Assembly: GCA_950097015.1 (NCBI GenBank)
Contig: CATNEN010000025.1
Coordinates: 1,054,001 to 1,118,000 of the forward strand
DNA length: 64,000 nucleotides
Source: Macrostomum hystrix
Lineage: Eukaryota > Animalia > Platyhelminthes
Direction: 5' to 3'
The translations under genes were made by a program, and so were the position numbers. The notes under the pieces are model-generated. The model saw only the letters and a list, made by a program, of their open reading frames with translations. It was not told the DNA's origin and did no database searches. Shown here one piece after another: positions 39,401 through 45,400 of this stretch (its first letter is position 1; each line of letters begins with the position of its first letter).

Positions 39401-42400
39401 TGAATGGAATGCGTCGAGTTGTAAATACTGAATGGAATGCGCAGAGTTGTAAATACTGAATGGAATGCGTCGAGTTGTAAATACTGAATGGAATGCGCAG
39501 AGTTGTAAATACTGAATGGAATGCGCAGAGTTGTAAATACTGAATGGAATGCGCAGAGTTGTAAATATGAATGGAATGCGTCGAGTTGTAAATACTGAAT
39601 GGAATGCGTTCGAGTTGTAAATACTGAATGGAATGCGTCGAGTTGTAAATACTGAATGGAATGCGCGGAGTTGTAAATACTGAATGGAATGCGCAGAGTT
39701 GTAAATACTGAATGGAATGCTTCGAGTTGTAAATACTGAATGGAATGCGCAGAGTTGTAAATACTGAATGGAATGCGCAGAGTTGTAAATACTGAATGGA
39801 ATGCTTCGAGTTGTAAATACTGAATGGAATGCGCAGAGTTGTAAATACTGAATGGAATGCGTCGAGTTGTAAATACTGAATGGAATGCGTCGAGTTGTAA
39901 ATACTGAATGGAATGCGTCGAGTTGTAAATACTGAATGGAATGCGTCGAGTTGTAAATACTGAATGGAATGCGTCGAGTTGTAAATACTGAATGGAATGC
40001 GTCGAGTTGTAAATACTGAATGGAATGCGTCGAGTTGTAAATACTGAATGGAATGCGCAGAGTTGTAAATACTGAATGGAATGCGCAGAGTTGTAAATAC
40101 TGAATGGAATGCGTCGAGTTGTAAATACTGAATGGAATGCGCAGAGTTGTAAATACTGAATGGAATGCGTTCGAGTTGTAAATACTGAATGGAATGCGCA
40201 GAGTTGTAAATACTGAATGGAATGCGTCGAGTTGTAAATACTGAATGGAATGCGTCGAGTTGTAAATACTGAATGGAATGCGTCGAGTTGTAAATACTGA
40301 ATGGAATGCGTCGAGTTGTAAATACTGAATGGAATGCGTCGAGTTGTAAATACTGAATGGAATGCGTCGAGTTGTAAATACTGAATGGAATGCGCAGAGT
40401 TGTAAATACTGAATGGAATGCGCAGAGTTGTAAATACTGAATGGAATGCGTCGAGTTGTAAATACTGAATGGAATGCGCAGAGTTGTAAATACTGAATGG
40501 AATGCTTCGAGTTGTAAATACTGAATGGAATGCGCAGAGTTGTAAATACTGAATGGAATGCGCAGAGTTGTAAATACTGAATGGAATGCGCAGAGTTGTA
40601 AATACTGAATGGAATGCGTCGAGTTGTAAATACTGAATGGAATGCGCAGAGTTGTAAATACTGAATGGAATGCGTCGAGTTGTAAATACTGAATGGAATG
40701 CGCAGAGTTGTAAATACTGAATGGAATGCGCAGAGTTGTAAATACTGAATGGAATGCGCAGAGTTGTAAATACTGAATGGAATGCGCGGAGTTGTAAATA
40801 CTGAATGGAATGCGTCGAGTTGTAAATACTGAATGGAATGCGCGGAGTTGTAAATACTGAATGGAATGCGCAGAGTTGTAAATACTGAATGGAATGCGCA
40901 GAGTTGTAAATACTGAATGGAATGCGCAGAGTTGTAAATACTGAATGGAATGCGTCGAGTTGTAAATACTGAATGGAATGCGCAGAGTTGTAAATACTGA
41001 ATGGAATGCGTCGAGTTGTAAATACTGAATGGAATGCGCAGAGTTGTAAATACTGAATGGAATGCGCAGAGTTGTAAATACTGAATGGAATGCGCAGAGT
41101 TGTAAATACTGAATGGAATGCGCAGAGTTGTAAATACTGAATGGAATGCGCAGAGTTGTAAATACTGAATGGAATGCGTCGAGTTGTAAATACTGAATGG
41201 AATGCGCAGAGTTGTAAATACTGAATGGAATGCGTCGAGTTGTAAATACTGAATGGAATGCGCAGAGTTGTAAATACTGAATGGAATGCGCAGAGTTGTA
41301 AATACTGAATGGAATGCGCAGAGTTGTAAATACTGAATGGAATGCGCGGAGTTGTAAATACTGAATGGAATGCGTCGAGTTGTAAATACTGAATGGAATG
41401 CGCGGAGTTGTAAATACTGAATGGAATGCGCAGAGTTGTAAATACTGAATGGAATGCGCAGAGTTGTAAATACTGAATGGAATGCGCAGAGTTGTAAATA
41501 CTGAATGGAATGCGTCGAGTTGTAAATACTGAATGGAATGCGCAGAGTTGTAAATACTGAATGGAATGCGTCGAGTTGTAAATACTGAATGGAATGCGTC
41601 GAGTTGTAAATACTGAATGGAATGCGTCGAGTTGTAAATACTGAATGGAATGCGTCGAGTTGTAAATACTGAATGGAATGCGTCGAGTTGTAAATACTGA
41701 ATGGAATGCGTCGAGTTGTAAATACTGAATGGAATGCGCAGAGTTGTAAATACTGAATGGAATGCGCAGAGTTGTAAATACTGAATGGAATGCGTCGAGT
41801 TGTAAACACTGAATGGAATGCGCAGAGTTGTAAATACTGAATGGAATGCGTCGAGTTGTAAATACTGAATGGAATGCGTCGAGTTGTAAATACTGAATGG
41901 AATGCGCAGAGTTGTAAATACTGAATGGAATGCGTCGAGTTGTAAATACTGAATGGAATGCGCAGAGTTGTAAATACTGAATGGAATGCGTCGAGTTGTA
42001 AATACTGAATGGAATGCGCAGAGTTGTAAATACTGAATGGAATGCGTCGAGTTGTAAATACTGAATGGAATGCGCAGAGTTGTAAATACTGAATGGAATG
42101 CGTCGAGTTGTAAATACTGAATGGAATGCGCAGAGTTGTAAATACTGAATGGAATGCGCAGAGTTGTAAATACTGAATGGAATGCGCAGAGTTGTAAATA
42201 TTGAATGGAATGCGTCGAGTTGTAAATACTGAATGGAATGCGTAACTCATAATTTATAGCTTTTGTAATTGAAAGACCTCGTTTTCAATTCAGTATGGAC
42301 ACTGCCTCTGAATATAGAAAATATCAGTGTTTCCCTGTAAAAATATCAGACCATCTATAACTGTACACAAATAAAAGGGATGAGGACAACGATCTGAAGT

Positions 42401-45400
42401 CTAGAATTCGTCAGCGTCTAACCAGAGAGTCAGACGATTTTCTCGGTCAGACGCTGATCGAAGTCCGCACACTTTCCGGCGAAATGGACGTCTGGTACAA
42501 CCTCGGTAGGTCCCGCACTCCCAGATACTTCCATTTGTCTTCAAAGTTTTCTTTTTCAGTACAGATAAGATACAAAAATTTCTGGATGAAAAAACTGTCT
42601 AACTGTCTTCAAATGCAAGACTGTGATTGGCTGGATTATTTCGCATTTGAGGTGGGCTGTTAAATCTCTAACCCAGGCTTGACATTAGCTTTTTACTCTC
42701 TACCCCAATTTTTCTGAACTTTTGGGCACAACCTCACACCCCCGTTTGCTCAGCTGATTGGCTGAGCAAATATTTGCTTAAACTTGGGGTTTGTACTTGG
42801 CCTTGGACAGTCTGACAGTCTGGCTGGCACAAAAGAGTGTTAAAATCGGAAACCTAATCTTGGCTGAACCGCATTCAACTGAATGATGACTAGAGAACTC
42901 TCTTATATTGTATTGCTCGAATGACTTTACTAATTAAAAGAATAAGATAAAAGAAGAAGGCAAAAAGTCATCAAAATCAAAGATTATTTTTCTACAAAAT
43001 TGTAAATTATCCAGAAAATTTTGAGTATCTTATCTTGACTGTAAAACTTTGCAAGCACAAAAAAAAATTTTCTACACCCTGTGTACCCAACTAACACCCA
43101 TCCCTCCGTGTAGTCATCCCGCACTATGCAAATCATAATTTAAGCTTTAATGTATTCCATGAAAGCACTTGTAATTAGACTCGCAATTTTTGCGAAGTAA
43201 CTTTTTTGTCTGAAATTGAGTTGTTTGTGTCTTCCGTGAATCCTTAGCATGTGCCTTGCGTTGTATTAGACTCATCTTATCAGTTTAAACTTGAAACATG
43301 GCCGCTACAAGGTTGATAAAAAGTATAGACATTTTTCGAATTTTGAAATGAGTGATTTATTAGGCACCTGTGCACCTGTTCAACAATGAAGGGATGAGGA
43401 CAATGATCTGAGAGCCCGAATCCGCTCCAAGCTGACATCAGAGTCGGACGACTTTCTCGGCCAGACAATGATCGATGTCAGCAAACTGTCCGGAGAAATG
43501 GACGTCTGGTACACGCTCGGTAGGTTTCACCTGGTTGCTATGGCCCAGGTGCCTGGTTGCTATGGCCCAGGTGCCTAGTTGCTATGGTCCAGGTGCCTGG
43601 TTGCTATGGTCCAAGTGCCTAGTTGCTATGGTCCAAGTGCCTAGTTGCTGTGGTCCAGGTGCCTAGTTGCTATGGTCCAGGTGCCTAGTTGCTATGGTCC
43701 AAGTGCCTAGTTGCTATGGTCCAAGTACCTAGTTGCTATGTTCCAGGTGCCTGATTTGCAAATTATTTTACCAAAAGACACATATTATGTCTTAAAACGT
43801 GTATTCAATTAATTACCAATCGATGTTCACTAACTTTATTGTTGTCGTTAGTTCTTACCTAACTACACTCCAACCAGCAAACGCTATGATTTCTTAACCT
43901 TAATTACCTCTTGCACATGTTAGTTTAATTATTAGAGCAGCTTTTTTTATTTTGTTATTTTTGTTTGATTGGTTGGATTAAGATCGATGCACATTAGTCA
44001 TCGTGTGAATGTATTACGGATTCAAAGCTTTCGAAAAGAAACTGATATTTTAGCCTGTGATGGAAATGCCAAGGACTTCTATAAATAGCATCTTAACTGA
44101 TGCTAAAAATAGAAGTCCTTGAAACTTTCGCTGATCTTCGAATTAGACTCTATCGGTGGAACCAAGGACTTAATGATGTATAACATGATTAGGATGCTAT
44201 ATTTAGAATTCCTTGACTGGATTGAAGCGACAGCTTTGGCCATAGAACCCCTAGGTGGCTCTGGAACTTCATGCTTGCCCTTTTCTATTAGAATTCATTG
44301 AATTCTCGTTTGATCTTACTGACTGATTTTGTTATACCATGAACTAGCTACTGAAAGTAGGGTGTAGAAAATAATTCGAAACACAATGCCGAATGTGACA
44401 TAGCAGTAGTAATAAGACATCAATTAAAATTCCAGAGAAGCGAACGGACAAGTCTCTGGTTTCTGGTGCGGTGCGACTGCACATCAGCGTAGAAATCAAG
44501 GGTGAAGAAAAGGTGGCGCCGTATCACGTGCAGTACACCTGCCTTCACGAGGTGAGCACATCCCACTAGCCTTGTACTCGTAGTTAGAGCGTCGGACTCA
44601 CGATTTCAAGGTCGGGGGTTTGATTCCCGACTCCAGTCGAACAATTTATGTCCTTTAGCACGACGCATTGCTTCAGGTCACCCAGTTGTTAAATGGGTAC
44701 TAGCATTAGCTGGAGTGATTGAGGGTGGGTGTGGCGTCCCCCAGTCCATGGACTGAACAGCCGTACGCAGTCTTCAGATGCGCCGTGCAATAGCTGCCGC
44801 TGTGCTGCCTGATTGAGGCAGGTGTAATAAAAAACTAGCTTATTGAACTCTGACAATTCAACGTGTTATTATGCAGTTCCAACACTGTCATTCCACAGAA
44901 CCTATTTCACTACATGTGCGAGGCATCCAAGCAGGAGGGCAAGGAGGAAGTCCGGCTGCCGCGGCAGGCCTCCGGTCAGTGCGACGACTCTTGGAAAGTC
45001 TACTTCGAGCCAGACATGCAGGAGATTGTGGACGAGTTTGCCATGCGATACGGCATCGAAAGCATCTACCGGGCGATGACGTAAGTCAACTGGAATCAAA
45101 CTGAGATCTAACTGGACTAGAAAGTTTTGTGGCTGATATCTGACACTTGTCTGTCAGCTGGAGTGACAGTTGATATCTGACACTTGTCTGTCAGCTGGAG
45201 TGACAGTTGATATCTGACACTTGTCTGTCAGCTGGAGTGACAGTTGATAGCTGACACTTGTCTGTCAGCTGGAGTGACAGTTGATATCTGACACTTGTCT
45301 GTCAGCTGGAGTGACAGTTGATATCTGTCACTTGTCTGTCAGCTGGAGTGACAGTTGATAGCTGACAATTGTCTGTCAGCTGGAGTGACAGTTGATAGCT

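Follow-up and report, generated by a model that had tools for sequence, protein, structure and literature searches.

Tandem mutually exclusive exons of neuronal genes are well known from the sodium and calcium channel pairs, from exons 5a and 5b of SNAP-25, and from the Dscam1 and Mhc clusters of Drosophila. Here we describe two exons, A and B, that resemble such pairs and that belong to an unc-13/Munc13 gene of the flatworm Macrostomum hystrix. They lie in a stretch of 64,000 nucleotides (nt) (assembly GCA_950097015.1, contig CATNEN010000025.1, positions 1,054,001 to 1,118,000 of the forward strand), hereafter called the window, and both encode loop 3 of the C2B domain. The C2B domain of Munc13 plays a central part in regulating vesicle priming, release probability, and short-term plasticity, and its loop-3 helix has so far been probed only by engineered point mutants. 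The preliminary description of this DNA, which drew attention to the pair, knew of no counterpart in vertebrate, fly, or worm Munc13. Our full-text literature searches agree with this, as no alternative exons were found described in the C2B domain of Munc13/unc-13 from vertebrates, flies, or nematodes; as shown below, however, the pair is not unique to flatworms.

Like the known tandem pairs, A and B are homologous exons of equal length that share their phases and differ by few residues in a functional surface, and they are predicted to be used one per transcript. Unlike in those pairs, exclusivity can here rest on the reading frame alone, given an exon length of 128 nt, and the 886-nt intron between the exons sets no steric limit. 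Taken as a whole, the explanation that we consider likely is that A and B are tandem-duplicated, mutually exclusive exons of the flatworm unc-13/Munc13 gene and form an ancestral pair. The gene can very probably make two versions of the C2B sensor.

Two homologous exons in the C2B region of a flatworm unc-13 gene

The unc-13/Munc13 gene is located on the + strand of the window. When its exons were searched against Pfam, a C1_1 domain (7e-13) and the start of a C2 domain (8.7e-16) were found within 35187-35852, MUN was found in four exons at 47599-52018 (best 2e-42), and a second C2 domain was found at 51467-52018. C1, C2B, MUN, and the C-terminal C2 domain are thus present in the expected order, C1-C2B-MUN-C2C, which is also that of rat and mouse Munc13-1 (C2B structures in PDB entries 6NYC, 5UE8, and 7T7V) and of C. 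elegans UNC-13. Together with the end-to-end alignment of the two exons to residues 757-798 of rat Munc13-1, this upholds the earlier naming of the gene as unc-13 and of the exons as loop 3 of C2B.

One exon, recognized by sequence, translation, and Pfam (35322..35852, + strand; donor TT/GTGAGC after 35852, the slash marking the exon boundary), encodes C1 and its linker to C2B as well as the initial half of C2B with the loop 1 aspartates and the polybasic strand; its start coordinate is not a mapped 5' end. The common upstream partner of A and B is a constitutive 42-nt exon (36593..36634, + strand; donor GTAAGT), which ends with RIKVRV and the TG of a Trp codon and has an ortholog at all flatworm loci examined. 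Their common downstream partner, also constitutive, is located at 44436..44542 (+ strand; donor GTGAGC), where an initial AG completes a Glu codon and is followed by KRTDKS. The flanking exon ends proposed earlier, 36634 and 44436, were found to be correct by sequence and translation.

Exon A (42378..42505, + strand) encodes the canonical version of loop 3, and 38 of its 42 residues are those of the common invertebrate form. Exon B (43392..43519, + strand) encodes an alternative version of the flatworm B type (R7, S12, S16) and reads DVSK where A has EVRT. Both measure 128 nt, and the 886-nt intron that separates them (42506..43391, + strand) shows no similarity to other introns. The two exons are identical at 98 of 128 nucleotides and at 32 of 42 residues, with 12 synonymous and 10 replacement codons between them and neither a stop nor an indel. 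They have the same acceptor (AAG/G), the same donor (G/GTAGGT), and the same phases (2 in, 1 out): in both, the first base completes the Trp codon, and one base is left over before GTAGGT. Every item listed in the preliminary description was reproduced exactly upon recomputation. Within the window, a tblastn comparison of A against B gave an E value of ~1e-19, so that their likeness is not due to chance, and a translated search of the window returned A and B as the only copies of the loop 3 exon.

Inclusion of either A alone or B alone leaves an open frame through C2B. When A and B are joined together, a stop is encountered 7 codons into B, and when both are skipped, the stop is immediate, in line with the frame break that had been predicted for double inclusion and double skipping. 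Because 128 is not divisible by 3, transcripts containing both exons or neither meet a premature stop and yield no full-length protein; productive mRNA must therefore carry one exon and lack the other. The exons agree in length and phase, have intact splice sites of their own, and are incompatible by frame, and together these traits make up the signature of mutually exclusive tandem exons that had been pointed out at the outset. We propose that in each mRNA position 36634 would be spliced to A or B, which would in turn be spliced to 44436, and the two resulting proteins would differ only in the C2B equivalents of rat residues 757-798. Two other means of keeping such exons apart were ruled out: steric exclusion, for which the intron between A and B is too long, and U2/U12 incompatibility, as both exons have identical, ordinary GT-AG sites.

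A tandem arrangement of this kind could also be created by the assembly, if alleles or homeologues had been collapsed side by side, and this genome is indeed rich in repeats and duplicated pieces. However, the 30 differences among the 128 positions of the copies follow a coding pattern, the DNA similarity of the copies comprises the exon and ~5 nt on each side and extends no further, and the sequence between them is unrelated and unique. Additionally, a sequencing run guessed to be DNA (X4) holds a 0.91 share of the words of the 2301-nt stretch 42300-44600, and the same layout, A followed by B, is found in the fluke Trichobilharzia regenti (see below). We therefore regard an assembly artefact as highly improbable.

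Exon choice would change the basic helix of loop 3

Both exons align without gaps to residues 757-798 of rat Munc13-1 C2B, which correspond to chain positions 85-126 of 6NYC and 229-270 of 5UE8. Since the rat Munc13-1 construct starts at residue 529 (PMC8648301), exon position 1 corresponds to D757, position 13 to R769, and position 16 to R772. Exon A is nearly identical to the Munc13-1 segment, and both A and B keep the acidic ligands, the basic amphipathic helix, and the LSGEMDVWY strand. In both, DEDxD...ESDD surrounds the basic helix. The acidic Ca2+-ligand residues, which were said to be retained in both exons, are indeed unchanged between A and B (D1, D3, D5, and ESDD, with SDD at positions 18-20).

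The loop-3 helix contains five basic residues in A and four in B, and thus one fewer in B, as first described. The basic residue is lost at position 16 (R772 equivalent), where every flatworm B exon has a serine. Similarly, position 12 (Q768 equivalent) is changed to serine in B, and position 13 (R769 equivalent) stays basic, with an R-to-K replacement. Macrostomum B harbors the further changes E28D, R30S, and T31K, in the stretch in which EVRT had been reported to give way to DVSK, and N41T; D28 is common to tapeworm-type B exons, and S30, K31, and T41 occur in Macrostomum B alone. The A/B differences map to the basic helix and to a single beta-strand face, three surface residues being changed in the strand that follows. 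Judging from the aligned exons, the main conserved change from A to B is the loss of the R772-equivalent arginine on the loop-3 helix. In contrast to Munc13-1 and UNC-13, for which our literature searches returned no alternative version of this segment, the flatworm gene possesses a second genomic copy that changes the equivalents of R772 and Q768.

The loop-3 helix enters the plane of the lipid headgroups (PMC8851502). When R769 of this helix is mutated (R769E), Ca2+-independent liposome binding and vesicle priming are strongly reduced (PMC8648301), and in worm UNC-13, mutation of the loop-3 Ca2+ sites enhances release (PMC11991699). By analogy, it is a reasonable idea that the exon switch would retune membrane/PIP2 binding. 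The B version would have a weaker electrostatic (Ca2+-independent/PIP2) membrane attachment, and the choice between the exons could allow neurons to adjust vesicle priming or the probability of release. The pair would represent a new instance of a known splicing device in a well-known domain, for which a functional reading is plausible. As a natural and conserved two-state helix, it offers a ready variant pair for liposome-binding and rescue assays, and it would demonstrate that exon choice serves invertebrates in diversifying the priming machinery, for which vertebrates use separate Munc13 genes.

Exon B is conserved among flatworms

The preliminary description had proposed a dN/dS comparison of the two exons. 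A versus B gave a ratio of 0.17 (dN 0.165, dS 0.99). Macrostomum B was also compared to the nearest B-type exons (contigs L001 and L003), which are near-identical to a tapeworm exon, and pN was ~0.10 and pS 0.69-0.85. With the nearest of them (L001), Macrostomum B shares 36 of 42 residues at a saturated synonymous distance. As far as sequence comparison can tell, exon B is under purifying selection and is no relic.

When 5.8 billion proteins were searched with the frame of exon B, short genomic reading frames of closely related sequence were obtained, and a second scan covered 1.8 billion representative proteins and then the contigs behind the matches. On a scaffold of T. regenti (L002), an A-type exon (KSKIRQKLTR, 189-314) and a B-type exon (RAKLRSKLTS, 1763-1888) follow each other in the same order as in the window, with ~1.5 kb between them, and both are bordered by AG/G and G/GT. 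In the tapeworms Dibothriocephalus latus (L005) and Rodentolepis nana (L006), a B-type exon (RSKLRSKLTS) is the sole copy after the 42-nt exon. Likewise, only B follows the 42-nt exon in contig L007, which carries a near-identical gene, and in both L005 and L007 the downstream exon comes after this sole B exon. A second unc-13 paralogue with an A-type exon only was found in Dicrocoelium (L010) and R. nana (L012). The first paralogue of Schistosoma curassoni (L011) has the A exon on a contig that stops 250 nt past A, and L001, L003, and L013 carry a B-type exon on contigs too short to tell of an upstream A exon.

Tapeworms were accordingly seen with a B-only unc-13 gene, and tapeworms and flukes with a second, A-only unc-13 gene, the orthology of the paralogues being read from short signature residues in few fragmentary assemblies. 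The alternative exons look as if they had been divided between gene duplicates in tapeworms. Exchange between alternative exons and gene duplicates is a known pattern, and in flatworms it would take the following form: schistosomatids, together with Macrostomum, would have kept both A and B in one gene, and tapeworms would have split them, with B only in this gene and A only in the second one. Both copies are thus found in other species as well as under selection. The A and B pair of the fluke and the B exon standing alone in tapeworms indicate that B is a working coding exon, usable here only in place of A. Furthermore, the split in tapeworms and the loss of acidic ligands in the copies of other lineages (see below) suggest that the two forms are functionally distinct.

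These comparisons bear on another possible role of exon B, namely, that of a regulated "poison" exon that is mainly included together with A in order to lower unc-13 output. Unproductive splicing is common in neuronal genes, and the stop that A+B inclusion places 7 codons into B would suit such a role. However, a poison exon needs no conserved frame, and B is conserved as protein, with the dN/dS of 0.17 given above. It also shares its type-specific residues with the B exons of flukes and tapeworms, and it is the sole exon at this position in tapeworms. We consider a predominant poison function very unlikely, and prefer the use of B as an alternative to A.

The exon pair probably predates the parasitic flatworms

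All flatworm B exons have R7, S12, and S16, and the A exons have K7, Q12, and R16. We constructed a maximum-likelihood tree of 30 exon sequences (42 columns), in which a branch (68/73) set all flatworm B exons apart from the other sequences and Macrostomum B grouped with tapeworm B (97/76). Forcing schistosome A and B together was rejected (approximately unbiased [AU] test, p-AU 0.016). Most likely, the pair is older than the divergence between macrostomids and parasitic flatworms, an age that these data favor but do not prove.

Indications that exon B is expressed

Three sequencing runs of one 2020 study, of unrecorded type, hold words of exon B, at shares of the sampled words of 1.00 (X1), 1.00 (X2), and 0.67 (X3). 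Run X7, likewise of unrecorded type, holds no exon B words, and X4 was not in the exon B listing, which came from an RNA search. Of the words of the stretch 42300-44600, X1 holds a share of 0.13, X2 of 0.08, X3 of 0.06, and X7 of 0.09. The 31-mer share expected for this stretch is 0.12 for A, B, and the downstream exon together and 0.077 for one alternative exon plus the downstream exon. The shares of the runs fit spliced RNA, with both forms in X1, B only in X2 and X3, and A only in X7.

If exon B were instead an intact but unused duplicate that had recently been silenced in this gene copy, as might happen when a further gene copy of this polyploid-like genome provides the B form, only A would be spliced in. 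Macrostomum B has ~6-7 private replacements relative to the consensus of its type (including S30, K31, and T41), versus ~4 in A, and its AAG acceptor follows a weak pyrimidine tract, both of which could be signs of disuse; besides, the support for its use consists of word totals and not of junctions. However, exon A has the same weak AAG acceptor. Moreover, B contains no stop or indel, its donor is identical to that of A, it has the 36 of 42 residues in common with L001 despite saturated synonymous sites, and RNA-like runs hold all exon B words (X1 and X2). An unused exon B therefore appears unlikely to us.

Several points weigh against our interpretation of A and B as an ancestral pair of mutually exclusive, functionally distinct exons. 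Runs X1, X2, and X3 are not on record as RNA, and splicing was deduced from their word totals rather than from junctions. Protein-database searches with the exon B frame, a 223-aa C2B fragment, and the C1-C2B exon returned no Macrostomum-derived protein, the best identity obtained with the C1-C2B exon being 74%. In T. regenti, the linkage of A and B crosses two N gaps in the scaffold. With regard to age, a tree constrained to unite Macrostomum A and B is worse by 7.3 log-likelihood units and is not rejected (AU p 0.23), so that on the 42 columns of this test an independent duplication within Macrostomum stays compatible with the data. Finally, the proposed effect on membrane binding is derived from mutants at neighboring residues and not at those that differ between A and B.

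Tandem copies of the loop 3 exon in other invertebrates

A second, splice-competent tandem copy was present in 7 of 80 metagenome contigs containing a loop 3 exon. In two of them (L038 and L041), the copy that comes after the canonical exon has other residues in place of the acidic ligands (NEHHD...EGDE). These second copies (L038:959-1084 and L041:2335-2460) are located ~330 nt downstream of the canonical exon and have intact splice sites, and they could encode a Ca2+-insensitive C2B variant. In the other five (L046, L054, L059, L072, and L076), a divergent copy lies upstream of a KARLRSKFTR exon. These five contigs are related; their copy is fast evolving, is located 1-1.7 kb upstream, and has partly lost the SDD motif, and in one of them it has a 6-nt insertion that keeps the phase. 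Yet another tandem pair was found in L008 and L009. Together, these contigs show three further invertebrate lineages with independent tandem copies of the loop 3 exon.

At 27 loci, by contrast with the flatworm gene, the three exons are fused, as is the case in many arthropod- or nematode-like contigs, and no alternative is possible there. We tentatively suggest that the C2B loop-3 exon may be a recurrent and partly very old splice switch across invertebrates, at which flatworms would toggle the R772 equivalent and others would replace the Ca2+-binding aspartates. If this were true, many animals would build Ca2+/PIP2-tuned, and possibly Ca2+-blind, Munc13 from one gene, thereby setting priming and short-term plasticity by neuron type.

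Candidate elements for the choice between A and B

A candidate RNA pairing arm, ATTTTCTACACCCT, is located in the intron between A and B (43067..43080, + strand). It is the perfect complement of a second candidate arm, AGGGTGTAGAAAAT (44359..44372, + strand), which precedes the acceptor of the following constitutive exon by 64 nt. A 14-nt perfect complement was matched by 3 of 300 dinucleotide shuffles. Pairing of 43067-43080 with 44359-44372 would loop out B and favor A, and this intron-intron pairing is one candidate selector, to be taken as a lead only. When the intron upstream of A was compared to the A-B intron, no complement above the level of the shuffles was obtained, and no selector for A was found in this comparison. 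Unlike the docking-site/selector sets of the Dscam1 type, the locus thus offers one weakly supported pairing, a single 14-nt complement that flanks B and for which no counterpart at A was found in this species.

Directly downstream of exon B, the intron contains a tandem array of 10 copies of a 22-mer (43530..43752). CAGGTGCCT occurs in every unit and is complementary to AGGCACCTG, which lies shortly before the acceptor of B (43362-43370). Pairing between AGGCACCTG and the array was absent from the minimum-energy fold and is likewise only a lead. Duplex folding of whole introns gave energies no better than those of shuffles and was dropped. The RNA around exon B (43350-43585) was more stable than shuffles (z -2.3), and in its fold the terminal 15 nt of exon B, adjoining the donor, are paired with the 5' flank.

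Other features of the window

Nearly every intron of the unc-13 gene is filled by a minisatellite of its own, with a different unit in each array. The largest one, with 197 copies of a 28-mer (36728..42243, 5.5 kb), takes up almost all of the intron that precedes exon A. Together with this array and the 22-mer array described above, minisatellites were found at 35860-36492, 45134-45476, 48112-48675, and 49625-50041; their units include a 20-mer (24.5 copies), a 37-mer (9 copies), and a 21-mer. A further array with a period of ~30 nt extends over 3.6 kb (29395-33030) upstream of the C1 exon.

ARAGORN found no tRNA gene in the window. A block of ~1.5 kb occurs twice, at 1048-2646 and 6901-8444, the copies being 5.8 kb apart; its translated frames are 77-97% identical, and it matched no Pfam family. 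In addition, a short dispersed repeat has copies in two unc-13 introns (44556-44753 and 47188-47397) and one copy upstream (6256-6339).

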